Source: Rebecca billardiae RCC1528
Taxonomy: Eukaryota > Protista > Haptophyta
NCBI GenBank assembly: GCA_965240325.2
Contig: OZ251234.1
Coordinates: forward strand, 434,001-498,000
Direction: 5' to 3'
DNA: 64,000 nt
This document shows, in pieces, positions 41,767 to 61,680 of the stretch. The notes below the pieces were generated by a model, which was not told the DNA's origin, did no database searches, and saw only the letters and a list, made by a program, of their open reading frames with translations. Numbering within the stretch: the first letter of the stretch is position 1; each line of letters opens with the position of its first letter. A program made the position numbers and the translations under genes.

Positions 41767-42855
41767 CTACGACGCGCCCGGGTGTTCGAGGAGCCTCGAG
41801 CTCAGGTGTTCGTGCAGGTCGTCGGCCGTCCACTCGGGCCCGCCCAGCTCGCGCAGCAGCTGCGCGCTCACCGGGCAGCCATGCTCGAGCATCCAGAGCG
41901 CCTGGTCGTATCGGCCGGCGTGGAAGGCGTACGCGAGGGCGAGCGACGACGTGGGCACGAAGCCGTGCCGGCTGAGCCACTCCATCGACTCGAGCTGCCC
42001 GCTGAGCGCCGCCCACTCGTAGAAGCGGCCGTCGTCGCCCTGCGGCTGCTGCACGTCCACCAGCGAGCCGGACGCGCACAGCCACATCAGCACCTCGGCG
42101 TGCTCGGGCTGCCACGTGCTGGCGAGCACGCCCTCGAGGACGTGCGAGCACTCGAATCGGTGCGCGAACAGCCACTCCAGCGCGCCGAGCTGCGCGCACG
42201 CCGCCGCCGCCTTGGCGATCGCCGGCTCCAGCATCGGCGGCCGGCCGTCGCGCCGCCACAGCAGCTCGAGCATCTCCGGCCCCCCGCCCTGCGCTGCGAG
42301 GATCCAGGTCTCGCAGTCGAAGGCGCAGCCGTGGCGGAGGGCAAAGGAGAGACACGCGAGACTCCCCGCGGCCGCGGCGCTCTCGCAGGTCTGCCGGCAC
42401 CAATCCGCGCCGTGTCGGCGCGCGAGCGCGAGCACATCGACGCGGCTCGCGCCTGCCGCGGCCGCGCACACGCCGCCCCAGCGCACGCCGGCCGAGTGCA
42501 GGTGCGCGATCATGTCGAAGGGCGCGTGGCGTGCGAAGAGCGCCATCGGGTCGGCTAGCCGCAGCCCGTGCGCGCACGCCCACGCGTACCGCTCGGGCGA
42601 TCGGAGGAAGGGCAGGAGCACCGTGCGGAAGCGGCCTGCGCCGCGCGCGCCCAGCACACGCCGGAGCCGGCGGCACGTGAGCGCGATGGGGAACGCCTCG
42701 CCCTCGAAGTCGACGAATGAGAGCACGTGGCAGAGCTCGTCATCACCGAGCACGCCCAGCAGCGAGCTTTCGCGTAGCCGGCGCGCGCCCCGGGTGAGCA
42801 TCCCACGCGTGAGCTTGCAGCAGATTACCAGTCGGTCACCGCTCCACACGCTCAT
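41767..42855 (-). CDS. F-box-like plus ankyrin-like repeat protein
   Basis: LLGVLGDDELCHVLSFV...ALTCRRLR; repeats of C..AA..G.L..L.W/F...HGC. Confidence 0.7.
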   Translation of the reverse strand: MSVWSGDRLVICCKLTRGMLTRGARRLRESSLLGVLGDDELCHVLSFVDFEGEAFPIALTCRRLRRVLGARGAGRFRTVLLPFLRSPERYAWACAHGLRLADPMALFARHAPFDMIAHLHSAGVRWGGVCAAAAGASRVDVLALARRHGADWCRQTCESAAAAGSLACLSFALRHGCAFDCETWILAAQGGGPEMLELLWRRDGRPPMLEPAIAKAAAACAQLGALEWLFAHRFECSHVLEGVLASTWQPEHAEVLMWLCASGSLVDVQQPQGDDGRFYEWAALSGQLESMEWLSRHGFVPTSSLALAYAFHAGRYDQALWMLEHGCPVSAQLLRELGGPEWTADDLHEHLSSRLLEHPGAS

Positions 42856-46213: not shown

Positions 46214-46434
46214 ACCGTCCCGGTCAGCACTCAATATTAATGATGTCCGGGAGTCGGGAGATAGGAATTATGCAGTATGCACCCACGCTACCCGCATTAC
46301 TAGATAATGATGAGTAATGTTCTGGTGGTAATCGAGGATCTGGACGGACGATCCCAAGCTATTCTTCCGCCTTTGAGCGCCGGCCGCCCCCCGGGCGGCC
46401 GCCGCCTTTCCCCGGCGTGTTGCCGACACGCGAC

Positions 46435-49400
46435 ATGTCCCCGCGTGCTATGCTGCCGCTCTTCCTCGCCCTCGCGGCGTCGGCGGCGCTGACGTGCAGC
46501 GCGGCGTTCCTCGAGTCGCTCCCGCTGAACGTGACGAGCGTGATCCCGGGCTCCCCGCGCTCGCTCGCCTCGTCGGCGCCGCGCAGCCTCTCGCGCCGCG
46601 ACGCGATCACGATGGTCTTCTCGCGCGCGGTGATTGCGCTCGGCGCCGACTGGGACGGCGCGCCGCCGGCGTTCGAGCTGGACCCTCCGACGACGCCGGG
46701 CAGCTTCCGCTGGGTCACCACCGCCATCGCGCGCTTCGATCCCGAGGAGGACTGGCCGCCCGACCTCGACCTCACCGTCGCGCCCGCGCGCGGGCTCGCA
46801 ACCTTTGACGGCGTCGGCCTGCGCGAGCGCGTCGAGGTGCGGTACCGCACGCCGGCGCTCACGATGTACCTGGCGCACGTGCAGTCAGCGCGCGCGACCA
46901 ACGCGACCGACGGCCTCTGGGACGCGCGCACCGCGCCCGTCGAGCCCGGCTACGCCGAGCTGCCGCCGGACGGCGCTGTCCTCCTGACCTTCTCCGCGCC
47001 CGTCGACCCGGCGGCGACCGTCGGCGCGCTCCGGCTGCGCGCGCCGGGCGGCGGCGCGCTGCGGCGCGTGCACGGGCGCGGGGGCACGTCGGCGCCGGTG
47101 CCCGGCCTCCGGCTCGGCTGCGACCAGGACCCCGCCGCGCGCAACACCACGCTGTGCGTCGAGCTGTCGGCGCCGTTGCCGCCGGGCGCGCGCGTGCTGC
47201 TGCTGCTGCCAAAGGGGAGCCGCGCGCACGCGCTCTTCGGGCCGACGCGCGCGGATCTGTCGGTGGAGCTCTCGGGCCTGGCGCCGTTCGCGTTCCCGTT
47301 CCTCCAGACCGAGCCCAAGCCGTACGGCCTGCGCCCCAAGTACCGCCGCCTCGACCTGTGGCTCCGGCACGGGCTGGGCGCGGGCGCGGGCGCGCCGCCT
47401 GCCGCGCTCGGCTCGGCCGCAGAGGCGACGGCGCTGCTCGCGCTGAGCAGCGCGATGACGGTGGAGCCCGCGCTGCCGTTCAACCTCTCGCGCCCGTCGC
47501 CCGGCGTCCTGCGCCTCGCCGCGCCCTTCGAGGGCGAGACCCAGTACAAGATCACCGTCGACGCGGCCAAGGCGGCGCGCGCCGCGCGCGAGGCGAGCGC
47601 GCCGCGCGGCGGCGACGGCGGCGCCGCGGCCGCGCTCATCGACGCGTTCGGCCTCGAGTTCGGCGGCGGCTCACTCCGGTCGGACGTGGCCTCGCCGAGC
47701 GCCGTCGCGCACACCACCTTCGTCACGCAGCGCCTGCCGCCCTTCCTCTGCGACTCGGGAGGCCACGCGTTCTTCATGCCCTCAGGCGCGGACGAAGACG
47801 CGGACGCGGACGCGGACAAGCAGGACACGGCGGCGAGCGCGGCAAGCGGGGGCGGCACGGGCGGCGCGCCGGCTGCGCTGCTCATGCTCGCGCGCGGGCA
47901 GAACCACTGCCTCGGCGGCGAGGAGGCGTGCAAGCTGCGCGCGCTCGCCGAGCAGGAGCCCACCGACCCCACCCTCGCCGCACTGCGCGCCGAGTGGGGT
48001 CTGAGCGCGCAGGACGCTGCCAGGCTGCGCGAGCGCGCGCGCGAGGCGCGCGCGGCGAAGCTGCTGGCGGACCCCAACTACGGCGCGCCGGTGACGGTGA
48101 CGCTCGCGGCGGTGGACGAGGCGTCGCTCCCCGCCGCGATCGCCACCGTGCTCTCCGATCGGCACGACTACGTCCCGCCCGCCGGCGCCTCCATCCGCAG
48201 CGGCGACGAGTACGCGCCGCCCGGCGCGCGCGCCGAAGGCTCGGCGCACGCGCCGCCGCGGCCACGGCCGTCGCTCTTCGCGCGCGGCGCGCGGCCGGGC
48301 GCGGAGGTGCGCGTGCCCGGCTCGAACGGGACGTCGTCGCTGCTCCTGCCCACCGCCGCCGCGCTCGGGCCCACCGGCCTCGCCGTGCGCACGCGCTGGG
48401 CCTCCTTCGACGAGCGCGCGCGCACGGTCGGGTCCGAGCCCACCGGCGCCCGTAAGAGCTCGCACTGGCTGGGCGCGCCCCGCTACGGCGCGCTGGCGCT
48501 GGCGTCGTATGCGGCGAGGCGCGGCGCGGGCGGCGAGGCGGCGGAGCTGGCGCTGTGGGTCACGCGGCTTGGCGGCGGCGGCGGCGTGGCGCCGGGAGTG
48601 CGCGTCGCGCTGTACACCACCCTCCGCCCGCAGCCGGGCGTGATGCGCCCGGAGCACGTGCAGCTGGTGGCAGAGGCGACGACAGACTCTCACGGGGTGG
48701 CCTTGCTCGCGCTGCCGCAGCCGTGGGCGGCGGAGGTGGAGGCGTGGGACGCGCGTGTGGGCGCGCAGCGCACGCTCGTCGGCGCGGTGCTTGACGGCAC
48801 CGGGCACATCACGCTCCTCCCGGCCATCGAGCCGCGCCCAGCGCTGCCGCAGCCGAGCGGCGCGCGCGCCTCCCTCGCCCTCGACGCGGCGCTGTACCGC
48901 CCCGGGGACGTCGTCCGGGTGAAGGGGTGGGTGCGCGAGCGGAGGGCGGAGGAGGGCGCGGCGGGCGCGGGGCGCGGCGGGCCGCCCGGCCGGTTCACGC
49001 CGGGCGGCTCGCCGCTCGCCGTCGCGCTCGCGCGCGCCGCCTCGGGCGCGGACGGCGCGGACGACGACTCGGCGGAGGCGGCCGCTGCCGCCGCGGCCGC
49101 CGCAACGCCCTCCCTCGCCGTGCCGGCTGCCGCCGCCACGCGCCGGCTGCGGCTGCGCGTGCGCTGGCGCGCGCCGCACGACAAGGGCTCGTCGGGCGAC
49201 CGCGGCGCGCAGCTCGGGTACACGCCCCACGACGACCCCGTCTCCGCCACCGACGGCCTCACCGAGCTGCCCCTCGACGCAGACGCGGAGTTTGGCGCGT
49301 TTGAAGCGCAGCTCGCCGTTCCGCCCGACGCAGAGCGCGCGCCCACCAGCCTCGAGCTGTGGAGCGAGCCGGACAGTCCGGACGGCGCGGAGGCGCTGGT

Positions 49401-52400
49401 GCTCGAGATGCTCGAGGACCTCGGCGAGGGCGGCGCCGCGCCGCGCGCTGAACCCGAGCTTCTCGCCTCCGCGCCGCTGCTCGTCGCGGAGCCGCGGCCG
49501 CCGACGGTGGCGCTCGAGCTCAGCGCGGTCGGCGCGCCGGCCGGCGCGGCGGTCGGCGCGGCGGGCGGCGCGGCGGTGAGCACGTTCTCGACGTTCGCCG
49601 ACGGCGAGCCCGTGCGCGTGCGCGTGCGCACGGCCACGTACCTCGGCGTGCCCGTCGGCCGCGCGCCCGTCAGCGTCGACTGGTCCGTCCGCGGCGCGTA
49701 CGGCGGCGGCGGCGGCGCGGTGCCGGCGGGCGCGAGCGCGCGCGCGCCGGACGCGGCGTGGACCGCCGACCTGCGCGCGCTCAGCGGCGGCGGCGGCGGC
49801 GCGGGGTCGGCTTCCACGCTGGCGGCGGGCGCGGAGGGCGGCGCGGAGGCCGCGCCGACGAGCGGGCGCATCGAGCTCACCACCGACGACGACGGCCTCG
49901 CCCTCCTCACCCTCGACGCCAAATCGCATGCCGACGCATTCGACGCGCTCGCCGCCGCGGCCGAGGGCGGCGCGCTGAGCGTGCACGCGCGCTGGGTCGG
50001 CCCGACGCGCGAGCTGGTGACGGCGAGCCTCGAGCTGGGCGCGGTGGCGGGGCCGGGCGGCGGGCGGCTCGCGCTGGCCACCTCGCCGCCCATCCCGCTC
50101 CCCGGCTACGACTTTGGCGTCGCGACGCACTTTGAGGTCGACGCCGACGCCGACGCCGACGCGGCGGCGGCGGCCGACGCCGCGGCCGGCGGCGGCGGCG
50201 GCGGCGTGGCTATGGACGTGGCGCTCTTCGCGGCGGAGGCGGCGCCGTCCGCGGCGCACGTGCGCGCGCACGGGCTGTCCGAGCTCAGCGCCGCGCTCGC
50301 GCACACCTCGTGCGCCGCCAACGCGCGCGCCTTCGGTGCGGACGCGCACGGCTGCCTGCTCCGCATGCCCGCGCGCGCGGCCGCGACCGTGCTCGTGGCG
50401 TGCGCGCGGCGCGGCGGCGCAGCGCGCGGCGCGGCCGACGCGCCGCCGCTGGCGTGCGCGGCGGCGCGCGTGGGCAAGTCGGCGTCGGAGTGGTCCGCCT
50501 CGCCGCTCGCGCGCCTCGACCCCTCGGGCGGCGCCGCCCACTTCTTCGCCGACAAGGCCGAGTATCGTCAGGGCGATCTCGCCACGATCTCGTGGGTTGC
50601 GCCGCACGCGGCCGGCGCGCACGCGCTCGCGCTGTGGGGCGACGAGCGCGCGCTGCGCTCGAGCTCGGCGCGCGCGCTGCCGAGCGGCGCGCAGAGCCTT
50701 GCGCTCCGCCTCGGCGCCGAGTGCGCCACCGGCTGCGGCCTCGCGCTCGCGCTCGCCGCGCCCGCGCGCGCGGCGCCGCTCGCGCTGCCAGCCGCCGTCG
50801 CTACCTCAGCGCTCGCCGACACGCGCGCGCCCACCGCGCTGCTGCTGCGGCGCACGCTCGCCGTGCGCGCGCCGCCGCCCGAGCTGCGTGTCGAGCTCTC
50901 GGTCGAGCCCGGCTCGGCCCCGCCGCCCGGCGCCGGCGCGCCCGCGGCCCCGCACCTCGCGCCGGGCACCTCCGCGCGCGTGCGCGTGCGCGTGCGCGAC
51001 GCCGCCACCGGCGCCGCGCCGCCGGGCGGCGCGCAAGTGTCCCTGCTCGCCATCGAGCGCTCGATGCTCGACGTGCTGCCGCACGCGCTGCCCGTGCCGG
51101 AGGCGGCGTTCGCCGAGCTGCGCGCGCGGCGCGCGGCGCCGCCCGCCGCGCAGTACCTCTCCCAGCCCCACCCCTCCGCCGCTGACGCCGTGCTCTCCTC
51201 CGCCGCCGTCTACGCGCGCGCGGCGGCCGCGATCGGGCGGCTGAGCGGCGCGGAGCCCTGGTGGCGCCCGCCGTCGGGCGCGGCGTGGGCGCGGCTGGAC
51301 GCGTCGGGCGGCGGGTGGGGCGGCGGGTACGCCGGGCGCTGGGACGGCGGGTACGGCGGCGCGGCCGAGCCCGACCTAACGCGCGCCCTCGAGCAGAACC
51401 TGACCACCCTGCTCGCGGCCATGGCCACGCGCATCACCGCCTGCCCGAACGGCTGCAGGCCGGGCGGCGGCGGCGGCTGGTTCGGGGACGGCTGGGGCGA
51501 GGAGGGGTTCGGCATGATGCGCAGCCGCTCGGTGCGCTTCGAGGCGATGGACGCCATGAGCTTCGGCGCCGCGCCCGTGATGATGATGGAGGCCGAGGCG
51601 ATGGACGACGGCGGCGGAAGCGGCGGCGGCGGCGGCGGCGGCGGCGCAAAGGCCATGCGCTCGCGCGCCGCCGGCGGCGCCGTCGAGGCCGAGTCGGCGG
51701 CGGGCGCGGCGGAGGCGGGCGCGGGCGGCGGCGCGCCGAGCATGGCGCTGCGCACCCACTTCGAGCGCGTCGGCCTGTGGGCGCCCACCCTGCGCGTCCC
51801 CGCCTCGGGCGAGGCGGTCGTTTCGTGGAACCTGCCGGACAACGTGGGCACGTGGGTGGTGCGCGCGCACGCGGCCTCGGCGTCCGCCGGCGCGTTCGGC
51901 CAGGCGGAGACGAGCGTGGTGGCGGCGCGCGCGCTCTCGCTGCTGCCCTCCGCGCCGCGCCTCGCGCGCGTCGGCGACCGCTTCGCCTGCGGCGTCAGCG
52001 CGCGCATCGTCGACGCCCAGGCGCTCTTCGCCGCCGCGGCCGACGCCGGCGGCGCCGGCGGCGCCGGCACCGACGGCGGCGGCGGCGGTGCCCACGGCGC
52101 CGATCCGCCTTCCGTGGAGCTGCGGCTGTACGTCGCGGTGCAGCGCGCGGACGGCCCGGCGCCGGGCGCCGACGCGCAGCCCCCGCTGCCGCTCTCGCTC
52201 GCCCCCGCCGACGCCGCGCACCCCGACGCACCCGCCGCGCGCGCGCGCGTGAGCCGCGCGGCCGCGGCCGCGCCGGTCGAGCTGACGGCGACTCTCGAAG
52301 CGGCGGCGCTCGGCGCCGCCAACCTGACGCTGCGGGTGGAGGCGGTGCGCGTCGGGGGCGGCGGGGCGGTGCTCGCGAGCGACTCGCTCACGCACGCCCT

Positions 52401-55400
52401 CGCCGTCGAGCCCGCCGCGCCCTCCGTCCGTGTCGCCACCACCTTCTCCGTCGACGGCGACGCGGCGGCCCTGCGCGAGCTGGACGCGGCGGCGGCGCGC
52501 GCGGACGCGCGGCTGAGCGGCGCGGGCGCGGGCGTGGGCGCGTCGGAGCGCGCGCTCGGCGCGGCGCGGGGGCACCCGGCGCGCGAGTACGCCAAGTGCG
52601 CCGTGCTCCCGTGGCGCGAGGGCCTCGCCTTCCCGCCCGCCGAGCCGGGCTCGGGCCAGATTGCGATCTCGGCGGGCGTCGGGTTTGAGGCAGCGGCGCG
52701 CGCGCTCGCCGCCGGCGCGGACGCGGCGGTGGCGCACGCGACGCGCGAGGGCGCGAGCGCGGACGAGCTGCACCGGCTGTCGAGCACGACGCTGCTCGCC
52801 GCGCTCGTCGGCTCGCGCCTCGTCAACGGCACGTACGCCGCCGCGCCCGACGGCGCCGAGGGCGGCGCGCTCGGCGGCCACGCCGCCGTGCGCGGCGCCT
52901 CGCGCGCCGGCGCGCGCCCGCCGCCGGCGGCGCGCGCGTGGGAGGCGGCGGCGGAGGCGGAGCTGCGCGCGCGCACGCGCGAGGACGGCGGCGGGCTGTG
53001 CTCCGTCGGCGGGCGCTGGTGCGGCGCCTCCTCACGCACCGTACACCACCCCTCGCCGCCCGGCGCGTACGGCGCAACGTACGCGTGCGCGCGCGCCTAC
53101 TCTGCGGGCGCGCAATCAGCATGGCCGCCCGAGGCGGCCGCCGACGTGCCGCTGCTCGGCACGGCGCTGCGGCTGCTCGGCGACGCGCTCGCGGCGGGCG
53201 CGCGCGTGCCCGAGGGCGTGCGCGCGCTCGCGCCGCGCTGGGCCGACGCGCTCGGCCGCGCGCTCGCCTGGGACGCCGTGCAGCAAACGTGCGCCGCCGC
53301 GGAGCTGCGCGGCAACGGCGCGGGCGGCGCGGCGGAGGTGGCGGTGGACGCGGCGGCGTGGGCGGCGGCCGCGCTGGGCGTGGGCTGGGCGGAGGGCGCG
53401 GCGGCGCAGCCGTACGCGACGTGGCCCCTCTCCTCCGCGCCCGCCGCGCCGGGCCCCGACGAGCTCAGCTGGCTCGGCGAGACACACGGCGCGGCCGCGG
53501 CCGCGGCGGCGCGCGCGGGCGCGGCGCGCGCGCTGCTGAGCGCGCGCGCGCTGCTGGCGGCGCTCGAGCGCGAGGGGTCCGCGGCGGGGCCGCGCGCGGA
53601 CGCGCTGTTCGCGCTCGGCGTGCTCGCGCCGCCGCCCTCCGCCGCGCTCTCCGCCGCGCAGCCCGCGCCCGACTCGCCCCCGCTCGTGCGCGGCGCGCAC
53701 GCCGCCGCGCGCCGGCTCGTGGGCGGGCTGCGCGTGACTGGGCGCACGGCTTACGTCTCGGCGGCGCCGGGCTCGGCGCACGGCGCGGACGGCGAGACGC
53801 AGGCGCTGGCGCTCGGCGCGCTCGCCGCGGCGACGGCGCGCGCGGCCGCGCACGCCGCCGAGCCGCCGCCCGCCAATCTCGCGCCGCGCCTCGCGCAGAC
53901 GGTCGCGGCGGGCGGCGCGGGCGCGGCCGTGGCGCGCGTCGGCGGCGGCGGCGGCTCGGCCGGCGGCCCTCTGGTCGGCCGCGCGGGCGCGCTGCGAGCC
54001 GCGGCGCTGTGCGCGTACGACGCGGCGACGGGCGGCGCGGCGCCGCACCTGCGCTTCGAGGCGCTCGTCGGGAGCCGCCCGCTCCTCCGCGCCGCCTTCG
54101 ACGCCGACGCGCCCGGCGGCGGCGTGCGCATGGCTGGCGTGGCGATGCCGTGGGCACAGCTCAGCGCGTCCGCGGGCCGCGCCGCGCGCGTGCCCGCGGC
54201 GCGCGCGCTGCCCGCGCCCGGCGCGACGAGCGCGCGCGGGGCGGAGGAGCCGCTGCTCTTCTTCGCGCGCGGGGAGGGCCGCGTGGGCGTCGCGCTCGAC
54301 CTCTCCTTCACCCCGCGCTCCACCGGCGCGCACACCGCGCCGCGCTACCGCGGGCTGCACGTCGAGCGAGCGCTGCGCGCCGAGCGCGCGGACAGCGGCG
54401 GCCGCGCCGGCCGCGCGCTGCGCGGCGCCGCGCTCAACGTGTCGCAGGCGGTGCGCGTGAGCATCTCGGTGACGACGGCGGACGACGTGTCGTGGCTCGT
54501 GGTCGAGGAGCGCCCGCCCGCCGGCCTCGAGCCGCTCGACCCCGCCGTGTACGGCGCGCAGGACGCGGGCGACTCGGCGCTCGACGGCCTGCAGAGCTGC
54601 CCGCGCTGGTACGGCGGGCGCGGGTACGATTCGGGGTATCCGGGGTATTCGGGGTACGGCGGCGGGTGGTGGGGCGCGTGCCTGCCCGCGTTCGAGCGCG
54701 AGATCCGACCGGGGCTGGTGCGCTGGAGCGCGCGCTTCGTCGGCGCGGGCACGCACACGCTGAGCTACACCGCGCTCGCCGCCACCGCGGGCTCGTTCAG
54801 ACTGCCGCCCACGCACGCCTACCTGGAGGAGGAGCCCGAGGTGATGGGGCTGTCGGAGGCGGGCACGCTGGTGGTGCGCGGGCGGGGCGAGGGCGGCGCG
54901 CACCCGCACCCGCCCGACGCGCCCGCGCCGCCCGTCTCGTGCGCCGACATGTCGTGCAGCGGCCACGGCGAGTGCGACACTGCCGCGGGCGCGTGCGCGT
55001 GCGACCCCGGCTGGGCGGGCGGCGCGTGCGAGCGCGAGGCGGGGGCGCACGCGCTGACGGTGGCGCGCGCGGAGGAGGGCGAGGAGCCGGGCTCGGCGGT
55101 GTTCAAGTACGCCGTGCGCCCCGCCGCGTCCGAGGACGACGACGCCGCCGCCGCGCACGCCGACGCGCCCGTGCTCTACGCCTACGCCTTCTCCTCCGAC
55201 GAGGGTGCGCTGCCCGCCGAGCGCGTGAGCATTGACGAGGCCGCGCGCTCGGTGCGCATCCGGCCGCTGCCGCCGAGCGCCGGCGGCGGCGCGGCGTTCC
55301 TCACGCTGGTCGCGTCGCACGACGGCACGTCGGTGCTGAGCCGGGTGCTGCGCGTGCACGTGCTCCCGAGCGGCGCGGTCCGCGCGCTCGCCCTCGACAC

Positions 55401-55809
55401 CGTCGCGCCCGCGCTCGTCGCCGGCGGCGGCCGCGTGCACGCCGCGGGCTCGCGCGCGCCGGGCCGGCCGATCGGCGCCGGCGGCGGCGCGGTGGGCGCG
55501 GCGGTGGCGGCGGCGGCGCACGCGGTGGAGGGCGAGGACGAGGCGTCGAGCGTCGCCTTCTTCGCCGCGTCCGCGCTCTGCCTCCTCCTCGCCGCCGCGC
55601 TGCTCGCCCTCGCCCTCCTCCACCGCCGCCGCGCCAAGCGCGCGCTCGCCGACCGGCCGGGCGCGCCCTCCTCCTCCGCCTCCGCTGTCGGCTTCCGACG
55701 TCTCTCCGACGGCGGCGCCGCGCTGCCGCTCAGCTCGGGCAGCGGGCGGGAGAGCGCGAGCGACGCGGGCGCGCCGGCGAGCTCGGGCGGCAGCTCGCGC
55801 ATGCACTGA
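46435..55809 (+). CDS. giant bacterial-type alpha-2-macroglobulin-like type I membrane protein with EGF domain, no thioester motif
   Basis: Signal peptide; VFSRAV..FRWVTT..FDP Ig-like domain; DAALYRPGDVVRVKGWVR; DKAEYRQGD; LRTHF..LWAP...LPDNVGTW; PRLARVGDRF; PAGLEPLDP...AGSFRLPPTHA; EGF CSGHGEC..CACDPGWAGGAC; C-terminal TM. Confidence 0.85.
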   Translation: MSPRAMLPLFLALAASAALTCSAAFLESLPLNVTSVIPGSPRSLASSAPRSLSRRDAITMVFSRAVIALGADWDGAPPAFELDPPTTPGSFRWVTTAIARFDPEEDWPPDLDLTVAPARGLATFDGVGLRERVEVRYRTPALTMYLAHVQSARATNATDGLWDARTAPVEPGYAELPPDGAVLLTFSAPVDPAATVGALRLRAPGGGALRRVHGRGGTSAPVPGLRLGCDQDPAARNTTLCVELSAPLPPGARVLLLLPKGSRAHALFGPTRADLSVELSGLAPFAFPFLQTEPKPYGLRPKYRRLDLWLRHGLGAGAGAPPAALGSAAEATALLALSSAMTVEPALPFNLSRPSPGVLRLAAPFEGETQYKITVDAAKAARAAREASAPRGGDGGAAAALIDAFGLEFGGGSLRSDVASPSAVAHTTFVTQRLPPFLCDSGGHAFFMPSGADEDADADADKQDTAASAASGGGTGGAPAALLMLARGQNHCLGGEEACKLRALAEQEPTDPTLAALRAEWGLSAQDAARLRERAREARAAKLLADPNYGAPVTVTLAAVDEASLPAAIATVLSDRHDYVPPAGASIRSGDEYAPPGARAEGSAHAPPRPRPSLFARGARPGAEVRVPGSNGTSSLLLPTAAALGPTGLAVRTRWASFDERARTVGSEPTGARKSSHWLGAPRYGALALASYAARRGAGGEAAELALWVTRLGGGGGVAPGVRVALYTTLRPQPGVMRPEHVQLVAEATTDSHGVALLALPQPWAAEVEAWDARVGAQRTLVGAVLDGTGHITLLPAIEPRPALPQPSGARASLALDAALYRPGDVVRVKGWVRERRAEEGAAGAGRGGPPGRFTPGGSPLAVALARAASGADGADDDSAEAAAAAAAAATPSLAVPAAAATRRLRLRVRWRAPHDKGSSGDRGAQLGYTPHDDPVSATDGLTELPLDADAEFGAFEAQLAVPPDAERAPTSLELWSEPDSPDGAEALVLEMLEDLGEGGAAPRAEPELLASAPLLVAEPRPPTVALELSAVGAPAGAAVGAAGGAAVSTFSTFADGEPVRVRVRTATYLGVPVGRAPVSVDWSVRGAYGGGGGAVPAGASARAPDAAWTADLRALSGGGGGAGSASTLAAGAEGGAEAAPTSGRIELTTDDDGLALLTLDAKSHADAFDALAAAAEGGALSVHARWVGPTRELVTASLELGAVAGPGGGRLALATSPPIPLPGYDFGVATHFEVDADADADAAAAADAAAGGGGGGVAMDVALFAAEAAPSAAHVRAHGLSELSAALAHTSCAANARAFGADAHGCLLRMPARAAATVLVACARRGGAARGAADAPPLACAAARVGKSASEWSASPLARLDPSGGAAHFFADKAEYRQGDLATISWVAPHAAGAHALALWGDERALRSSSARALPSGAQSLALRLGAECATGCGLALALAAPARAAPLALPAAVATSALADTRAPTALLLRRTLAVRAPPPELRVELSVEPGSAPPPGAGAPAAPHLAPGTSARVRVRVRDAATGAAPPGGAQVSLLAIERSMLDVLPHALPVPEAAFAELRARRAAPPAAQYLSQPHPSAADAVLSSAAVYARAAAAIGRLSGAEPWWRPPSGAAWARLDASGGGWGGGYAGRWDGGYGGAAEPDLTRALEQNLTTLLAAMATRITACPNGCRPGGGGGWFGDGWGEEGFGMMRSRSVRFEAMDAMSFGAAPVMMMEAEAMDDGGGSGGGGGGGGAKAMRSRAAGGAVEAESAAGAAEAGAGGGAPSMALRTHFERVGLWAPTLRVPASGEAVVSWNLPDNVGTWVVRAHAASASAGAFGQAETSVVAARALSLLPSAPRLARVGDRFACGVSARIVDAQALFAAAADAGGAGGAGTDGGGGGAHGADPPSVELRLYVAVQRADGPAPGADAQPPLPLSLAPADAAHPDAPAARARVSRAAAAAPVELTATLEAAALGAANLTLRVEAVRVGGGGAVLASDSLTHALAVEPAAPSVRVATTFSVDGDAAALRELDAAAARADARLSGAGAGVGASERALGAARGHPAREYAKCAVLPWREGLAFPPAEPGSGQIAISAGVGFEAAARALAAGADAAVAHATREGASADELHRLSSTTLLAALVGSRLVNGTYAAAPDGAEGGALGGHAAVRGASRAGARPPPAARAWEAAAEAELRARTREDGGGLCSVGGRWCGASSRTVHHPSPPGAYGATYACARAYSAGAQSAWPPEAAADVPLLGTALRLLGDALAAGARVPEGVRALAPRWADALGRALAWDAVQQTCAAAELRGNGAGGAAEVAVDAAAWAAAALGVGWAEGAAAQPYATWPLSSAPAAPGPDELSWLGETHGAAAAAAARAGAARALLSARALLAALEREGSAAGPRADALFALGVLAPPPSAALSAAQPAPDSPPLVRGAHAAARRLVGGLRVTGRTAYVSAAPGSAHGADGETQALALGALAAATARAAAHAAEPPPANLAPRLAQTVAAGGAGAAVARVGGGGGSAGGPLVGRAGALRAAALCAYDAATGGAAPHLRFEALVGSRPLLRAAFDADAPGGGVRMAGVAMPWAQLSASAGRAARVPAARALPAPGATSARGAEEPLLFFARGEGRVGVALDLSFTPRSTGAHTAPRYRGLHVERALRAERADSGGRAGRALRGAALNVSQAVRVSISVTTADDVSWLVVEERPPAGLEPLDPAVYGAQDAGDSALDGLQSCPRWYGGRGYDSGYPGYSGYGGGWWGACLPAFEREIRPGLVRWSARFVGAGTHTLSYTALAATAGSFRLPPTHAYLEEEPEVMGLSEAGTLVVRGRGEGGAHPHPPDAPAPPVSCADMSCSGHGECDTAAGACACDPGWAGGACEREAGAHALTVARAEEGEEPGSAVFKYAVRPAASEDDDAAAAHADAPVLYAYAFSSDEGALPAERVSIDEAARSVRIRPLPPSAGGGAAFLTLVASHDGTSVLSRVLRVHVLPSGAVRALALDTVAPALVAGGGRVHAAGSRAPGRPIGAGGGAVGAAVAAAAHAVEGEDEASSVAFFAASALCLLLAAALLALALLHRRRAKRALADRPGAPSSSASAVGFRRLSDGGAALPLSSGSGRESASDAGAPASSGGSSRMH

Positions 55810-56808: not shown

Positions 56809-58338
56809 TCAGGGCGCGGCCTGCGCTGCCTGGGCTGCCTGCGCCGGCGCGCGCCGCCCGCGCTGCCTCAGCCGGTGCGGCCGGCGGCCTCGGCGCTGCG
56901 ACAGCCCCTTCTCCGTCGCGCCGTACGCAAAGTCGTGCTCCGGACTCAGGCCGCCCTCGAGCAGGGGCGAGGGCGGCTCGGCGCCGTCCGCTGGCGCGTC
57001 CACGCCTCCGCGCAGCTCGCGGAAGCGGCGGATGTGCGCGACGACGGCGCGCTCGACCACGGCGTTCGCCCCGGCCGTCTCGCACCCCGCCGGCAGGCTC
57101 TGGTTGCACCGCGGCACGCGCAGCGACTCGTAGCTCCCCAGGCAGCGCCGGCCGGTCTCGAGCGCGATCGCGCGCGTGCAGAGCGTCTCACTGTCGTCCT
57201 TGCCGCACACGAACAGCGTGGGCACGCTCACGTTGGGCACGGTGGCGCCCGCGGGCGCGCCGTCGTTCGGGTCGCCGTCGAAGAGCATGCGCATCACCAC
57301 CGTGTCCGACGACGCGCCCGCGCCGATCAGCTGATCGACGCCCATCTTGGGCGGCAGCGGGAGCCACGCGCGCGCGGGCGGCGGCGCGGCGCTGCCGGCG
57401 GCGGCGGCGGCGGCGCTCGCGTAGAGGCCGCCGTTGGAGTACCAGTCGAGGGCGTGCTGGAACTGCGTGGCGGTGGCCCAGCCGCCGTAGTGCGGGTCGA
57501 TGGTCGGCGGCGCCTGCGTCACCAGCGCGGTGAAGAGGCTGTCGCCCGCCGCGGACGCCGCGCCCGGCTCGCTCAGCACGGTCAGCCTCTGCGCCGCCAC
57601 CTGCTGCGCGAGGTCCGCGGACGGGCCGTAGAGCGCGGGGCCGAGCGCGGCCGGGTGCGGCGCGGAGAGGGAGGTGAACGAGAGCACGCGCTCCGCCGCC
57701 CACTCCGCCGTGCCCAGCGCCACCCAGCACAGCGTCGCGCCGACGTCGTGGCCGATCAGGTGCAGGCGGCGCAGGCCGTGTGCGTCCGCGAGCGCGCGCA
57801 TGTCGTCGATCAGCAGCTCGGGCGCGTACGCGTCGGCGGCGGCGGGGCGCGCGCCGCGCGAGTAGCCGCGCATGTTGCACGCCAGCGCGCGCACGCCCAC
57901 CTCCTCCGCCAGCGCGACGAGCAGCCCGTCGTACACGTACGAGAACTCGGCAAAGCCGTGCACCAGCAGCACTCCCTCCTCGCGCGCCGCGCCCGTCAGG
58001 CCGCCGGGCGGCTCAGTGGCGCGGCAGTCGAAGGTGAGCTGGGGGTCGGTGCCGTTCGCGTCCTTGGGCTCCGGGCTGATGGTGATGAACGCGATCCGAT
58101 CGCCGAACACCTCCTCCTCGTGCGCGCTGAACTCGCCCCACGACAACCGCGGGTCGACCGGCGTCGCGTTCGCCGCGCCGCTCGCATTGGCGCTCACATT
58201 CTCGGCCACGGCGGCGTCGACGAGGCGCACGGGGCGCGGTCCGAGCGGCGCGTGCCCTCCGACAAGGCTCGCCACCACCACGCCTGCGACCACCAGCGCG
58301 CAAGACCCGCCTGCGACAGCGCGGCGGCGGCGCCACAT
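56809..58338 (-). CDS. alpha/beta hydrolase, epoxide-hydrolase-like, with N-terminal membrane anchor
   Basis: VLLVHGFAE, MRGYS, GHDVGA (Asp nucleophile), PTLFVCGKDD. Confidence 0.85.
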   Translation of the reverse strand: MWRRRRAVAGGSCALVVAGVVVASLVGGHAPLGPRPVRLVDAAVAENVSANASGAANATPVDPRLSWGEFSAHEEEVFGDRIAFITISPEPKDANGTDPQLTFDCRATEPPGGLTGAAREEGVLLVHGFAEFSYVYDGLLVALAEEVGVRALACNMRGYSRGARPAAADAYAPELLIDDMRALADAHGLRRLHLIGHDVGATLCWVALGTAEWAAERVLSFTSLSAPHPAALGPALYGPSADLAQQVAAQRLTVLSEPGAASAAGDSLFTALVTQAPPTIDPHYGGWATATQFQHALDWYSNGGLYASAAAAAAGSAAPPPARAWLPLPPKMGVDQLIGAGASSDTVVMRMLFDGDPNDGAPAGATVPNVSVPTLFVCGKDDSETLCTRAIALETGRRCLGSYESLRVPRCNQSLPAGCETAGANAVVERAVVAHIRRFRELRGGVDAPADGAEPPSPLLEGGLSPEHDFAYGATEKGLSQRRGRRPHRLRQRGRRAPAQAAQAAQAAP

Positions 58339-58499: not shown

Positions 58500-61400
58500 C
58501 TACGTACTCTGTCCTTATTGGATTACCTTAAATTCCCCTTTATAACGGGCTCCGGGTGATCAGACTGGCGGCCGAAGCCTCCAGCCCTACCCTGGCCAGC
58601 CCCCAACCAACCACCACCCTCACCCAACCTCAAACCACTGACCGATACACCGAGTGCCTTGACACCACTCCGCTGTGGACAGCCCGCCTCCAGAGGGGGC
58701 GGGGGTATGCCATTGCCGACAGCATACAAGCCCAACACTGTGGGGTGGTCCCAGGTACCAGCAGTGCACTGCCTTGCAATTCGAGATCATCGAGTTTGAG
58801 CCGAGTCGGCAGACTGGGCACCCCCTAGGGCGCCCCAGTGTGGGCAGAGGGCCAGCCACTAGCCGATCCCTGCGCGGGGGAGGGGACGGAGGGGGCTGTC
58901 AGCGAGCCCAGTAGCTGGGCAGGGGTCTGGGCCACTGGTCCTGGCAGTGAGGCGCCTGTATTTCACTCGTGCTGCTATGGAGGCAGATGGTGTCATGTCA
59001 GACATGTGTGCGATATCGGGCATCAAGTCAGGGCGTGGGCCGCTGTAGGACGCAAGCAGAGTGGTGGCGATGGCTAATACGCCTGGGGAGGTGTCGTTTG
59101 CGCGCCTCTTTCTGCTGCTCTTTGCAGGGGGTTGCATACTTCGTTGCGCAGGCTGAGCCTGCCTGCCAGTTGGTGTTAGGATAGGCACATTTGCCTGGTG
59201 GGGTGGGCAGTGTCGTTTGGGCGGGGGGCTGTCTTGCTGAGCTTGACTAGGAGGAGGCAGCCTGCGCCTGGGGGCTGCCAGTGTCTTGGCAGAGCCAGCA
59301 GGTGGCTGTGTGGCCTGCTGTCCAGTGTCTGACTGTGTAATGCCGTTGTGAGCTCCGTGACCAGTGCGACTGCCCGCAGCAGGGTCTGCCTCAATCTCAG
59401 GGCCCCCATGTGTCAACACATTGTCCGACGGACGCACATCGCTGCGAGCCAGTGGGGTAACATATTGGAGCGGCCATGCCACAAGAGGTGTGGCAGGCTG
59501 CAGAGGCCACGCAATCACCATAGGGAGGGGGCGAGCACGCTGTAGGGGCCATGCCCGCAAGAGTAGCTGAGGGCGCACGTGGTGACCGCGCGCTATTGGC
59601 TGGTGCAGGTTGGCCTGCCCCGCGCCTGCCTGCCAGCCCTGGCCAGCCTGGGCAGGGGGTTGCTGCTGGATGACAGGTGGTCCCTGTAACTGATTATTCA
59701 TGGCAATCACCCCTCCTGGGCCTGCCTGTGCCTGTGGGGGCGGGGGCTGCCCCCCCTGGTCGTGCCCAGGCGGCGGCCGAAGCTCCCTGGCATGTCGGAG
59801 GAGACGCCCTGCCTTTGACAGCTGGGAGTCCACGTCCTTGCGGGCCTGCATGATGCCTAGCCCTGCCTTCAGTAAGGCCACGTGCATGGTCCTGCCGAGA
59901 TGCACGTTGCCCCCCACAGTGGTCTTCAGTGTGCTGGGCACCCTGCCCAAGAGGGCAGCCCCAGAGCACACATGTCGCGCCAAGTTCCATGCTGCAGCCT
60001 GTCCCTGCATGAAGGGCTCAATTATATGCGATATGCTTCTGGCAGCAGTCTCGCGGTAGGCATCGACCTCAGGGCACTCGGAGAAGAGGTGGTGTTCAGT
60101 ATCTGGCGCTGGATGTAGCAGTGGAGTATGATCACAGAGGGGGCAGGCATCGCTAAATGCAGCCCCAGACTGGAATCGCACAGATAACAACGTCGGGTCT
60201 CGCAGGGCAGCCGGCTGCAGGAACTCATATCCGTGGTGGAGTATGTAGTAGGCAGGCACAGTGCTGGCCTGCCAGGTCCGTAGGATGCCAGTGGAGGCCT
60301 CTGGCCACACGCCAGTCCATTCGCCCACCAAGTCACAGCTGGACTTGGTGGCTTGCAGGTGCGTTGCCCTTTGTGACAGCACACTGTCATACACAAGGGG
60401 CTTGATTCTGCCTGCCACTGGCTCTCCGTTGGCCAGCTGTACCAGCGCATGAGAACCCGCATTTGGGTGGCCACCTCTCTTGTGAGTCACACAGGGGGTT
60501 GTGGGGTCAGAGCAGCATAGCTTGGCCCCAGCATCGCTGCATGCGTTGAGCAGGGTTTTGGGGTTCATCCCTGCTTGGCGCAAAGCCGCCACACTGTGTT
60601 GGCTGACAGTGCAGTGATGGTCCCCCTGAGTGTGAGTGAGGCTGAGGTGTAGCGCTGCAGCATCGTCAGCAGAGTGCGCCTTGACATGCTCAAATGAAGT
60701 GGTGCTGCCATGCATCAAGCGGCGCCAGCCCACCAGGCTCATGACCCTGGCGATGTATGGTGCGTACGCGTGGTGCCCCTGCCGCAGCCGTCGGTCCCAG
60801 GGGTCGTTTTGCCACATTTCGGCGGCCTTTACCATTTCCTGCAGGTCAGTGCACACCAGCAGGTTGGCGGTGGGGTCTATCTGCACCAATGCATCGGTGA
60901 TGGCCATGAATTCGGCTGGGCCTGGTGCCTGGTGCCCCTCGAACTTGGAGCAATACACATGCACAGGGGCAGTGTAATTGTTGCCACTGAAGAAGGAAAA
61001 GGCACATGCAGCCTGTCCGTTCTCTGCATCGAATGAGCCGTCAGTGGCCACCATTAGCATGCCAGGTACAGGAAGTGCCGGCAGATGGCGGGGATTGGGT
61101 GGATCACAGATAGTGCGCTTGGCGACAGGCACGTGCCCCAGGTACCTGTAGTAGCTCTGGTCGGTCAGGACTGCCCTCAGCATATCCCTCACTGCCAGTA
61201 TCACCGCCGGGCGGGACCTATGTGGCAGTGAGGACAGCTCAGCATAGAACGCAGTGGAGACCATCTGTCTTGGTGGCTGCTGCATGAGCACACCTAGCAA
61301 CACGTGCTGGGTACCGTTCACCAGTGAGTGCTCGATCCGGCTGAGCATCTCTCCGTTCGCGTCAGGGAGGCCGCGTGGTGCCAAGCAGGGGAGGGCAGCT

Positions 61401-61680
61401 GCCCCTGGCATTGCTGCGAGTCTTGTATATGCCCTGTGGGTCCGGTTTGTGGCCAGCATCCCGAGACCGGGGGCCAGCTGCTGCATCAGCTTGCTGCCGA
61501 GGTTCACTTCGGATGGGAGCAGTGCCCACCCCATGCGTCGTACAGAATTTCTCCCGGTGACGATGGTGGAGGCAAATGTAGAGGCGCCGCGTACGCGCGC
61601 CCGCGCCGGGTGCTCGACTGATTGCAGGGCACCCATGGCTGCCATGGACGTGCGCGCACATAGCCCATCACATCAAACTC
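58500..61680 (-). mobile_element. 5'-truncated non-LTR retrotransposon
   Basis: Abrupt composition change (few CpG); ORF with RNase H and CCHC finger, RT core absent; boundaries approximate. Confidence 0.75.
58859..61645 (-). CDS. C-terminal part of LINE ORF2 (RNase H, zinc finger, Gln/Pro-rich tail)
   Basis: ATDGSF, AEFMAI, CTDLQ, HVKAHS, NACSDAGAK (RNase H); CPLC...EHHLFSEC. Confidence 0.8.
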   Translation of the reverse strand: MAAMGALQSVEHPARARVRGASTFASTIVTGRNSVRRMGWALLPSEVNLGSKLMQQLAPGLGMLATNRTHRAYTRLAAMPGAAALPCLAPRGLPDANGEMLSRIEHSLVNGTQHVLLGVLMQQPPRQMVSTAFYAELSSLPHRSRPAVILAVRDMLRAVLTDQSYYRYLGHVPVAKRTICDPPNPRHLPALPVPGMLMVATDGSFDAENGQAACAFSFFSGNNYTAPVHVYCSKFEGHQAPGPAEFMAITDALVQIDPTANLLVCTDLQEMVKAAEMWQNDPWDRRLRQGHHAYAPYIARVMSLVGWRRLMHGSTTSFEHVKAHSADDAAALHLSLTHTQGDHHCTVSQHSVAALRQAGMNPKTLLNACSDAGAKLCCSDPTTPCVTHKRGGHPNAGSHALVQLANGEPVAGRIKPLVYDSVLSQRATHLQATKSSCDLVGEWTGVWPEASTGILRTWQASTVPAYYILHHGYEFLQPAALRDPTLLSVRFQSGAAFSDACPLCDHTPLLHPAPDTEHHLFSECPEVDAYRETAARSISHIIEPFMQGQAAAWNLARHVCSGAALLGRVPSTLKTTVGGNVHLGRTMHVALLKAGLGIMQARKDVDSQLSKAGRLLRHARELRPPPGHDQGGQPPPPQAQAGPGGVIAMNNQLQGPPVIQQQPPAQAGQGWQAGAGQANLHQPIARGHHVRPQLLLRAWPLQRARPLPMVIAWPLQPATPLVAWPLQYVTPLARSDVRPSDNVLTHGGPEIEADPAAGSRTGHGAHNGITQSDTGQQATQPPAGSAKTLAAPRRRLPPPSQAQQDSPPPKRHCPPHQANVPILTPTGRQAQPAQRSMQPPAKSSRKRRANDTSPGVLAIATTLLASYSGPRPDLMPDIAHMSDMTPSASIAARVKYRRLTARTSGPDPCPATGLADSPLRPLPRAGIG

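Follow-up and report, generated by a model that had tools for sequence, protein, structure and literature searches.

The window, a stretch of 64,000 nucleotides from Rebecca billardiae, contains a gene whose product is almost certainly an alpha-2-macroglobulin (A2M) of bacterial type, in which the A2M body is followed by an EGF module, a stalk, a transmembrane (TM) helix and a Ser-rich tail. On the basis of sequence comparison, the protein is a member of a large eukaryotic family of membrane-anchored bMG10-type A2Ms. The best overall explanation, which we hold with modest confidence, is an A2M-type surface protein that belongs to an old eukaryotic family and works by a trap mechanism.

The open reading frame (ORF) occupies 46417..55809 of the plus strand, and its first ATG at 46435 opens 3,124 codons without interruption, as the initial annotation had reported for an ORF of about 9.4 kb. 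The gene has no introns, and its GC content is 81% (GC3 96%). Because chance long ORFs are frequent in all frames at the ~80% GC of the window DNA, ORF length alone is weak proof of a gene. A chance ORF, or bacterial contamination of the assembly, is nevertheless a negligible prospect, because the relative P0001 aligns with the window protein over its full length, initiator Met and final residues included (51% identity, E=0), which establishes that the gene is real, and because the contig of P0001 carries eukaryotic genes (a split longin/synaptobrevin) and 164 relatives were found at E<=1e-30. The host is eukaryotic, judging from the assembly, which comprises 72 Mb in 41 contigs and has at least 61 matches to light-harvesting proteins; the ORFs adjoining the gene encode an alpha/beta hydrolase, an RNase H-containing product and ankyrin repeats. 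The giant size of the protein is due to ~950 residues of lineage-specific Ala/Gly-rich insertions. Its features, in window positions, are listed below with the source of each assignment.

46435..46506 (+): start codon and signal-peptide-like N-terminus, residues 1-24 (translation; cleavage predicted)
46507..48531 (+): N-terminal ~675 residues with VIALG.DF and RWVTT.IARFDP (family consensus)
48532..51426 (+): MG beta-sandwich array and equivalent of the bait-region domain (AF2 model m5823b60f8322, VIA-align, family profile)
51427..51750 (+): bait-like linker, residues 1665-1772 (AF2 pLDDT, composition)
51775..51990 (+): MG7 (Pfam A2M, PF00207), residues 1781-1852 (E 4.1e-8; 33.4 bits, cut-off 21)
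52612..52698 (+): W.EG..LP.A.PGSG....AGVG.LPAV, residues 2060-2088 (hallmark motif at the CUB-like/helical junction)
52675..54030 (+): helical TED-like alpha/alpha-toroid, residues ~2081-2532 (AF2 model mac59a461afea)
52774..52800 (+): equivalent of the thioester loop, residues ~2114-2122 (hhalign against bacterial A2Ms)
54352..54840 (+): bMG10 (PF17973), residues 2640-2802 (E 3.9e-15, model positions 1-131 of 131)
54937..55038 (+): single EGF, residues 2835-2868 (EGF_Teneurin 24.8 bits, cut-off 24.3; EGF_2 21.4 bits)
55039..55551 (+): juxtamembrane stalk, ~170 aa (conserved with P0001, e.g. YAYAFSSDE)
55552..55620 (+): single TM helix, residues 3040-3062 (sole Kyte-Doolittle window above 2.2; aligns with the TM helix of P0001)
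55621..55809 (+): cytoplasmic tail of 62 aa, 23% Ser, and stop codon (translation)

The single-exon gene thus appears to encode a type I membrane glycoprotein with an ectodomain of ~2,800 residues, for which N-glycosylation and a location at the cell surface are predicted. A conserved AFLE..LPL motif comes directly after the signal-like N-terminus, and this end of the protein can be aligned with those of the three closest homologs and throughout the family; Big_5/Ig-like domains were detected only in relatives (P0001, P0104, P0114 and P0128). The Pfam search suggested with the initial annotation matched the A2M, bMG10 and EGF profiles in the window protein, and a search of NCBIfam gave no match. 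This bMG10, a domain in which bacterial A2Ms typically end, is the sole copy in the 72-Mb genome. The EGF module, TM helix and Ser-rich tail that had been proposed are all present. The six Cys of the EGF module are spaced C-x4-C-x5-C-x6-C-x-C-x8-C, its PDB sequence matches include selectin EGF domains, and EGF was the only match when the window protein was used as a single sequence to search PDB. The juxtamembrane region 55039..55551 has no Pfam match, and the distance from EGF to TM helix is 190-240 aa in members of the window protein's clade, similar to that in the window protein itself. Right after the TM helix lies a basic stop-transfer stretch, HRRRAKR, and a C-terminal GGSS..H end is common to the window protein and P0001.

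The assignment to the A2M superfamily, and to its bacterial (bMG10) type, was borne out concordantly by Pfam, profile and fold matches. AF2 models were obtained for residues 700-1875 (pTM 0.66) and 1760-2870 (pTM 0.69), and roughly one in three modelled residues has pLDDT below 60. When the former model, which covers the MG array, was compared by VIA-align, the highest scores were those of 4rtd (Z 24.2), 4u48 (Z 23.9) and 4ziq (Z 23.8), the last of these placing model residues 2-1156 on chain 299-1073, and the scores of animal proteins were Z 21.2 for CD109 and Z 20.4 for A2M and C3. The model of the C-terminal half matched bacterial A2M at Z 20.1 and CD109, a worse fit, at Z 14.6. Bacterial A2Ms of E. 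coli and Salmonella score 3-5 Z units above TEP1, CD109, A2M and C3, a comparison limited to profile and fold scores against PDB, as the tree described below contains no metazoan A2M or TEP sequences. The top match by Foldseek was again 4u48 (E 2.5e-22). Against PDB sequences, the family profile matched ECAM at 1e-23, Salmonella A2M at 6e-21, TEP1 at 5e-7 and C4 at 6e-3; it is collinear with ECAM and its match covers ECAM 188-875, whereas hhalign of a three-sequence alignment against YfhM alone gave a probability of 3%. Matches to MG2, bMG3, MG4 and A2M_BRD come from low-bias relatives, where these domains stand in bacterial order together with Big_5. In the window protein the MG array is collinear with E. 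coli A2M residues ~299-1020, the R..F....LW motif precedes MG7, and MG7 has pLDDT 80-95 in both AF2 models. The bacterial domain order claimed at the outset therefore stands, because the MG array, MG7, CUB, TED and bMG10 are collinear with E. coli A2M.

The thioester is absent. No C.EQ motif occurs anywhere in the 3,124-aa window protein, and when the family was aligned by hhalign with four CxEQ-bearing bacterial A2Ms (probability 99.96%, E 4e-38), the bacterial YPYGCxEQ was mapped to residues ~2114-2122, with low per-column confidence at this spot. The mapped loop, at 52774-52800, lacks the Cys and Gln and falls where the initial annotation had noted a missing CxEQ, namely ~52700-52800. The thioester pair is likewise missing at the TED position in all 36 rows of the family alignment, and no relative inspected has CxEQ there. 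Some relatives retain a YP(Y) remnant of the loop, which hints at a thioester loss independent of that in MagD/YfaS. Since C5, MagD and ovostatin are also A2M-superfamily members without a thioester, its absence does not exclude membership. In the 36 sequences, the adjoining hallmark motif has an invariant E2062 and nearly invariant P2067, G2083 and S2073.

The AF2 models indicate that the fold of a CUB with an inserted alpha/alpha-toroid TED is present. Helices of the TED-like domain lie at positions 326-773 of the model fragment, and low-confidence Ala/Gly-rich insertions enlarge the domain. It is aligned within the whole-chain matches to ECAM and SaA2M; taken alone, it matches toroids of the terpene-cyclase type (Z 15.7, rmsd 3.6 A, ~255-261 residues). 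The role of this domain is less certain, because the Pfam TED profile has no match in the window protein and an HMM of the family TED did not match the YfhM TED at the level of sequence.

A bait-like region rich in Gly and Met, ahead of the RTHF..W motif, had also been proposed, and it was found at 51427-51750. The linker of 108 aa lies directly before MG7, has AlphaFold pLDDT of ~31-35 without secondary structure, and consists of 28% Gly, 19% Ala and 9.3% Met, the Met content of the rest of the protein being 0.6%; the 108-aa segment richest in Met in the whole protein begins at residue 1663. Across the family the linker is 31-111 aa long and variable in sequence, with Met enriched at least 3-fold in 14 of 24 members. 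Its position and predicted disorder make it a candidate for an exposed bait region whose cleavage would trigger trapping.

The taxonomic survey that the initial annotation had called for revealed membrane-anchored, thioester-less A2Ms in many unrelated single-celled eukaryotes. A HMMER profile search yielded 3,097 matches, the 164 mentioned above at E<=1e-30 among them. A word-based search found two relatives with the whole window protein and none with its C-terminal 1,191 aa, because Ala-rich words swamp the candidates. The members inspected or named belong to green algae (chlorophytes), streptophyte algae (Closterium), glaucophytes, dinoflagellates, a diplonemid, an ichthyosporean (Creolimax) and an amoebozoan (Copromyxa), and the named ones represent at least seven eukaryotic lineages. 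Their recurring plan consists of a signal peptide, a thioester-less A2M body, bMG10, usually EGF or half-EGF, and a C-terminal TM helix; EGF follows bMG10 in most members, and a C-terminal EGF and/or TM helix is a family trait, of which the window protein has both. In relatives known from transcripts (MMETSP, Gymnodinium, Creolimax), a single ORF encodes bMG10, EGF or half-EGF, and the TM helix. The family motifs AFLE..LPL, RWVTT.IARFDP, W.EG..LP.A.PGSG....AGVG.LPAV, RVQGRTAYI and QPE.MGLS are all found in the window protein.

In public databases, family members are labelled "hypothetical" or "EGF-like domain-containing", and many algal gene models appear to end at EGF; for these two reasons the family is easily overlooked. 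Our literature search (bMG10; haptophytes or protist names with macroglobulin) found no description of it, and the sole mention of an algal A2M-family protein that we found is the MEROPS I39 homologue listed in Micromonas pusilla, in a paper that states that, among plants, I39 is confined to Mamiellophyceae (PMC4189545) and gives presence only, without architecture, thioester loss, membrane anchoring or a wide protist distribution. Large proteins of ~2,300 aa with MG-like beta-sandwiches, the CAGE proteins, have been described in protists and Gram-negative bacteria; they lack Pfam domains, and no PDB matches were obtained for their helical parts (bioRxiv 10.1101/2025.09.22.677704). Identity with the CAGE complex was rejected, because the window protein has Pfam A2M, bMG10 and EGF matches and whole-chain A2M fold matches.

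A tree was built from 27 eukaryotic members and 48 bacterial A2Ms. The eukaryotic members form one clade apart from the bacterial proteins (support 100), in which the window protein is sister to P0001, and Creolimax and Copromyxa group apart from the group containing green algae, glaucophytes and the window protein. YfaS has a long branch, whose placement close to the eukaryotic clade is supported at only 80-89, and the family HMM scored a thioester-bearing A2M of Bacteroidota at 127.5 bits, YfaS at 108.9 and YfhM at 85.9. The clade and the recurring plan together indicate that EGF/TM anchoring and thioester loss are old family traits. As far as these sequences tell, a single old origin of the eukaryotic family fits the data, and if the gene did pass between bacteria and eukaryotes, whichever way, this would have happened long ago.

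That this alga recently acquired the gene from bacteria by horizontal transfer, and that EGF and TM segments were then fused to it, might be suggested by the bacterial nature of the Pfam models matched (bMG10, and bMG3 and Big_5 in relatives), by the bacterial origin of the top structural matches and by the lack of introns. We regard it as very improbable, because the closest relatives are eukaryotic and share the EGF and TM plan, the named members are spread over at least seven lineages, the eukaryotic proteins are separated as one clade from the 48 bacterial A2Ms, and a GC3 of 96% shows that the gene is fully adapted to its host. In addition, when motifs specific to the family (from 10 low-bias members) were searched for in 185,579 bacterial and archaeal species genomes, only one stretch, in a Putridiphycobacter MAG, was found. 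This stretch was rejected as a bacterial member and judged to be eukaryotic DNA on account of its GC content (50% vs 36%), its low ORF density and the splitting of its frames at similar places in both copies. The initial view that a scaffold had been horizontally acquired and then converted in R. billardiae is thus not upheld, since the same plan is found across protists and the eukaryotes form one clade.

Among characterized A2Ms, the type I proteins of E. coli (YfhM, ECAM) and Salmonella (4ziq, 4rtd, 5a42, 4u48) are the top profile and structural matches of the window protein, share its bMG10 end domain, and are collinear with it from about ECAM 299 to the C-terminus. ECAM is also tethered to a cell-bounding membrane with its body outward, as is predicted for the window protein. 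However, ECAM carries a CLEQ thioester (residue 1187) and no EGF and is anchored by an N-terminal lipid, whereas the window protein has no thioester, one EGF and a C-terminal TM helix, with ~400 extra N-terminal residues and the aforementioned insertions of ~950 residues. Its N-terminus lacks the lipobox Cys found in YfhM (LAGC) or in the nearest bacterial matches, and neither the partner gene pbpC of type I nor the mag/yfa genes of type II were found among the neighbouring ORFs. CD109 is likewise a cell-surface-tethered member of the superfamily whose fold matches the MG array; it differs in being GPI-anchored, in keeping the thioester and in ending in a receptor-binding-type domain of the animal kind, not bMG10. 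MagD/YfaS of type II resembles the window protein in missing the thioester and keeping the full A2M body with a bait, a putative one in the window protein, but the family-profile scores do not set the window family clearly closer to it than to type I.

By analogy with the thioester-less MagD, the window protein would most likely act as a surface-tethered, non-covalent protease trap or sensor, a mechanism that we put forward tentatively and at somewhat less than even confidence. The defence or prey-recognition role suggested in the initial annotation is likewise putative. With the protein at the cell surface or facing the lumen of an endomembrane compartment, the disordered Met/Gly/Ala-rich linker would be exposed as bait, and an attacking protease would cut it; the MG7-CUB-TED-MG10 half might then rearrange and hold the protease non-covalently, so that the membrane would be protected locally and a signal might pass through the tail. 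Monomeric A2Ms normally need the thioester for protease retention, the best-documented cases of trapping without it are oligomers or complexes, and MagD needs its partners MagA, MagB and MagF, none of which is evident for the window protein. MagD, held at the inner membrane, still traps protease non-covalently (PMC5764988) and acts at a membrane, to which the window protein is also predicted to be anchored. The EGF module and conserved tail, which would suit an adhesion or signalling receptor as well, count against a trap.

A non-inhibitory surface receptor or adhesion molecule, in which the A2M scaffold would be a large binding platform only and the EGF and tail would serve interaction or signalling (e.g. 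in mating, prey or symbiont recognition, or matrix or scale assembly), is in our judgment rather unlikely, although several observations agree with it. There is precedent in the roles that CD109 or C5 play independently of a thioester, loss of the thioester is common to the whole family, the TED has strongly diverged from that of protease-trapping A2Ms, the W.EG..LP.A.PGSG....AGVG motif is conserved without a known trapping role, and both the EGF near the membrane and, with P0001, the cytoplasmic end are conserved. On the other hand, a disordered linker is kept at the bait position in every member, with recurrent Met enrichment, and the whole trap architecture (MG ring, CUB, TED and MG10) has been retained over a very wide phylogenetic span, which is hard to reconcile with a passive scaffold.

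A2Ms are innate-immunity and protease-control molecules of animals, whose bacterial counterparts guard the periplasm, and the history between the animal and bacterial proteins is disputed; an early proposal of transfer from animal to bacterium was reportedly made by Budd et al. in 2004. Bacterial-type, membrane-anchored, thioester-less A2Ms in algae, glaucophytes, dinoflagellates, diplonemids, ichthyosporeans and amoebae fill a phylogenetic gap. A more far-reaching possibility, which we hold at low confidence, is that the family is a hitherto unrecognised, ancient pan-eukaryotic A2M/TEP branch, type I membrane-anchored, thioester-less and of bMG10 type, that predates the Amorphea/Diaphoretickes split and has conserved a surface trap or sensor triggered through a Met-rich bait. 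If this is true, the old view that A2Ms belong to "animals and diderm bacteria" would be wrong, and the Met-rich bait might also respond to oxidation. As a candidate for defence against proteases, or for sensing them, at the protist surface, the family is open to experiment, with laboratory cultures and some genetic tools for member genera such as Chlamydomonas relatives and Creolimax.

The open reading frame at 46417..55809 on the forward strand has 3,130 open codons and gives a protein of 3,124 residues from its first ATG at 46435. Because the DNA is so GC-rich (57–84% GC in 2-kb bins of the window, 74–84% across the ORF region), ORF length is weak evidence of coding, and other frames overlapping the gene also carry ORFs of 600–1,050 aa. 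We regard the frame as coding on the basis of its GC3 (96% vs 81% GC overall) and, above all, of homology. A word-index search gave two full-length relatives, P0001 (2,930 aa), the closest homolog, with 51% identity to the window protein across the whole alignment from start Met to last residues, and P0002 (2,808 aa), with 38% identity. The contig of P0001 also carries a zf-HIT gene and a longin/synaptobrevin gene that is broken into two parts, and it is thus eukaryotic DNA. In the window's own assembly (72 Mb, 41 contigs) the light-harvesting protein family is matched no fewer than 61 times, and the host is therefore an alga; these genes stand in near-identical arrays, tandem or inverted, and their matches run without interruption (e.g., C12:667121-669893, C7:2891544-2895449 and C7:3299001-3307727, by contig of this assembly). 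For one of these light-harvesting proteins the nearest cluster consists mostly of haptophyte sequences, a weak hint of affiliation. The window protein is single-copy in this genome, and none of the following neighbors suggests a functional link.

41767-42855, minus strand: ankyrin-repeat ORF
56809-58338, minus strand: 509-aa alpha/beta-hydrolase ORF, convergent with the A2M gene
58859-61645, minus strand: 928-aa ORF with a weak RNase H match, possibly a retroelement remnant

By its fold and domain order the window protein belongs to the A2M/TEP superfamily, and by its end domain it is of the bMG10 (bacterial) type. Pfam recognizes three domains in it.

Residues 1781-1852: A2M (MG7), E 4e-8
Residues 2640-2802: bMG10, E 4e-15
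Residues 2835-2868: single EGF

Relatives of ordinary amino-acid composition also carry Big_5, bMG3, MG2, MG4 and A2M_BRD, ordered as in bacteria, and the Pfam model of TED matched none of these relatives. A family profile built from 36 members, when compared with PDB sequences, matched E. coli YfhM (ECAM, a type I A2M) at 1e-23, collinearly across ECAM 188-875, MG7 and bMG10, and then Salmonella A2M (SaA2M; 6e-21), insect TEP1 (5e-7) and complement C4 (6e-3). Two parts of the protein were modeled by AlphaFold with family alignments as input. The model of residues 1760-2870 (pLDDT 74, pTM 0.69) comprises MG7, a sandwich resembling CUB, a large domain of helices, another beta half, bMG10 and a small EGF; Foldseek placed Salmonella A2M at the top (E 2.5e-22), followed by ECAM and then C5, C3, A2ML1, CD109 and TEP1, and VIA-align gave Z 20.1 over 585 residues against ECAM (model 69-1057 to chain 1015-1653), 16.2 for TEP1 and about 14.5 for A2M, CD109 and C3. 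Taken by itself, the helical domain of this model resembles alpha/alpha toroids of the terpene-cyclase type (Z 15.7, rmsd 3.6 A), which is what a TED should show. The model of residues 700-1875 (pLDDT 67, pTM 0.66), a chain of beta-sandwiches, matches ECAM and SaA2M best (Z 22.5-24.2; model 2-1156 aligned to ECAM 299-1073), with CD109 (21.2) and then A2ML1, C5b, A2M and C3 below. Between them, the two models align residues ~700-2816 collinearly with ECAM 299-1653, and the bacterial domain order proposed in the initial annotation is thus borne out. About 947 residues, Ala/Gly-rich, lie in alignment columns with an occupancy below 30% among the 22 other members, and the remaining core of ~2,180 aa is of the usual family size; the "giant" length is therefore due to GC-driven insertion and the stalk described below.

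The absence of a thioester, noted at the outset, was also confirmed: C.EQ occurs nowhere in the window protein, and the few such strings among 152 relatives are all off the thioester site, e.g., CPEQ within bMG10. YfhM and three genuine Bacteroidota A2Ms have YPYxCxEQ-type motifs, and when the C-terminal half of the family was aligned globally to these four proteins, profile against profile (probability 99.96%, E 4e-38, 697 columns), the thioester loop fell at residues ~2114-2122 (52774-52800), with low per-column confidence at that spot. CxEQ is missing there from all 36 aligned members; the family loop is shorter, roughly (Y/D)P(S/T)A, with YPY or YP.G kept by some members. Just upstream, at the CUB-to-TED junction, lies W.EG..LP.A.PGSG....AGVG.LPAV (52612-52698), the family's strongest hallmark and the most conserved stretch noted in the C-terminal half, with an invariant E2062 and a nearly invariant G2083. 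No counterpart of it was matched in bacterial A2Ms, and we know of no function for it.

Downstream of bMG10, the EGF, TM helix and Ser-rich tail are present in the same ORF, as first noticed. Six canonically spaced Cys mark the EGF, which is followed by a stalk of ~170 aa, kept in P0001, in which no domain was recognized. The sole strongly hydrophobic segment, residues 3040-3062, precedes HRRRAKR and a 62-aa tail (23% Ser), whose end, GGSS..H, is common to the window protein and P0001. Because of this segment and an N-terminal signal-like sequence, a type I topology is predicted. Several transcript-derived members have bMG10, EGF and TM within one ORF, and thus in one mRNA. Unlike these members, which continue to the TM helix, the annotated green-algal proteins P0006, P0007, P0008, P0009, P0012 and P0014, from Monoraphidium, Raphidocelis, Chlamydomonas schloesseri, Edaphochlamys and Gonium, have gene models that stop at most ~14 residues past the EGF; either annotation overlooked the last exons, or some forms are secreted.

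Searched with a HMMER profile, 1.84 billion representatives yielded 3,097 matches at E<=1e-3; at cut-offs of 1e-10 and 1e-30 the counts were 899 and 164. The full-length members inspected among the best 150 share a signal peptide, an AFLE..LPL start, bMG10 and an EGF or half-EGF, with a C-terminal TM and short tail wherever the sequence continues. Organism names, recovered for 30 of these members and from a later search, cover Chlorophyceae (Monoraphidium, Raphidocelis, Scenedesmus, Tetrabaena, Gonium, Chlamydomonas schloesseri, Chlamydomonas sp. UWO241 and Edaphochlamys with two paralogs), Ulvophyceae (Bryopsis), a streptophyte alga (Closterium), glaucophytes (Cyanophora, Gloeochaete), dinoflagellates (Polarella, Gymnodinium smaydae), a diplonemid (Artemidia), an ichthyosporean (Creolimax) and an amoebozoan (Copromyxa). 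Database labels are "hypothetical", "EGF-like domain-containing" or the automatic [quoted passage not shown]. In a 62-row tree P0001 is sister to the window protein (support 100), and these two, Gymnodinium and three metagenomic sequences form a six-member clade (98) outside the green-algal clade.

Thioester loss and membrane anchoring are therefore family-level traits, and the initial annotation, whose observation stood and whose interpretation was supported in part, found no support in assuming a scaffold horizontally acquired and converted by this alga. With a profile of ten low-bias members, eukaryotic members scored 956-2,368 bits and the best bacterial A2Ms at most 350, with a sharp drop between; the latter included a Vicinamibacterales protein, proteins of Bacteroidota and Planctomycetales, and unnamed lipoproteins with RWI.T as a common motif, and CxEQ was present in some of them and absent from others. 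In a tree that joins 27 eukaryotic sequences with 48 bacterial ones (FastTree only; 1,642 columns, strongly heterogeneous composition, eukaryotes other than animals, root unplaced), all eukaryotes lie on one side of a branch of length 0.68 (support 100); candidate bacterial sister groups have support 80-89 and long branches, and Creolimax and Copromyxa group (98) apart from the green algae, glaucophytes and window-protein group (94). Across 185,579 bacterial and archaeal species, with one genome scanned per species, two family-specific peptide patterns matched only one "Putridiphycobacter" MAG. Its two copies of the eukaryote-type A2M (L007 and L008, OZ245997.1 709964-728576 and 749415-768057) are broken over several frames at similar, intron-like break points, within DNA of ~50% GC and low ORF density that spans at least 690-788 kb, where each A2M-like ORF ends directly past the EGF and NACHT-HEAT and ankyrin ORFs also occur; the rest of the MAG as sampled has ~35-38% GC (36% at 6.22 Mb), and its genuine A2Ms are intact ORFs with CxEQ in 36% GC DNA. 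The stretch is probably eukaryotic DNA assembled into the MAG; loci L014-L017 of this GTDB species genome, labeled "MAG: Putridiphycobacter sp.", are also concerned. The clade, the score gap and the pattern scan contradict a recent transfer, and the sequences are compatible with one old origin of the eukaryotic family. Family HMM scores (109 bits for the type II YfaS, 86 for the type I YfhM, 128 for a thioester-bearing Bacteroidota A2M) do not favor type II over type I.

The bait-like region expected ahead of MG7 was found at residues 1665-1772 (51427-51750), a linker of pLDDT 31-35 without secondary structure, ending a few residues ahead of R..F....LW at the MG7 start. It consists of 28% G, 19% A and 9.3% M, with 0.6% Met in the rest of the protein, and the 108-aa window with the most Met begins at residue 1663. 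Across 24 members the linker is variable in sequence and 31-111 aa long, and in 14 of them, from distant lineages, Met is enriched at least 3-fold, peaking at 16-19% in one dinoflagellate and one MMETSP transcript. That composition is kept while sequence is not suggests functional constraint, and this would fit a candidate bait.

Bacterial A2Ms sit at the inner membrane, where their presumed role is protection of the periplasm. The thioester-less MagD still traps a protease non-covalently (PMC5764988). The window protein would likewise be membrane-held, through its C-terminus, but lacks the type I thioester, lipoprotein anchoring and operon context. The CAGE complex, considered as an alternative identity, was rejected as a different family. 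The literature searched, which is incomplete, contained no description of a eukaryotic bMG10-type subfamily, though one may exist elsewhere, and its only mention of algal A2Ms was a list entry for Micromonas pusilla in a paper that regards MEROPS family I39 as confined to Mamiellophyceae among plants (PMC4189545). The main rival reading, a recognition or adhesion receptor using the scaffold as a binding platform, draws on the diverged TED, the EGF module and the conserved tail, and we consider it somewhat less likely than the reading favored next. Since the MG ring, bait-position linker, CUB, TED and MG10 are all retained, and in view of membrane-held bacterial A2Ms and MagD, we tentatively favor, short of even odds, a non-covalent protease trap or a protease sensor that is tethered at the surface and triggered through its bait. 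In such a system, a cut in the linker would trigger the trap of the membrane-tethered protein, and the protease would be held non-covalently or the cut sensed; speculatively, a Met-rich bait may reflect the preferences of target proteases or oxidation sensitivity.
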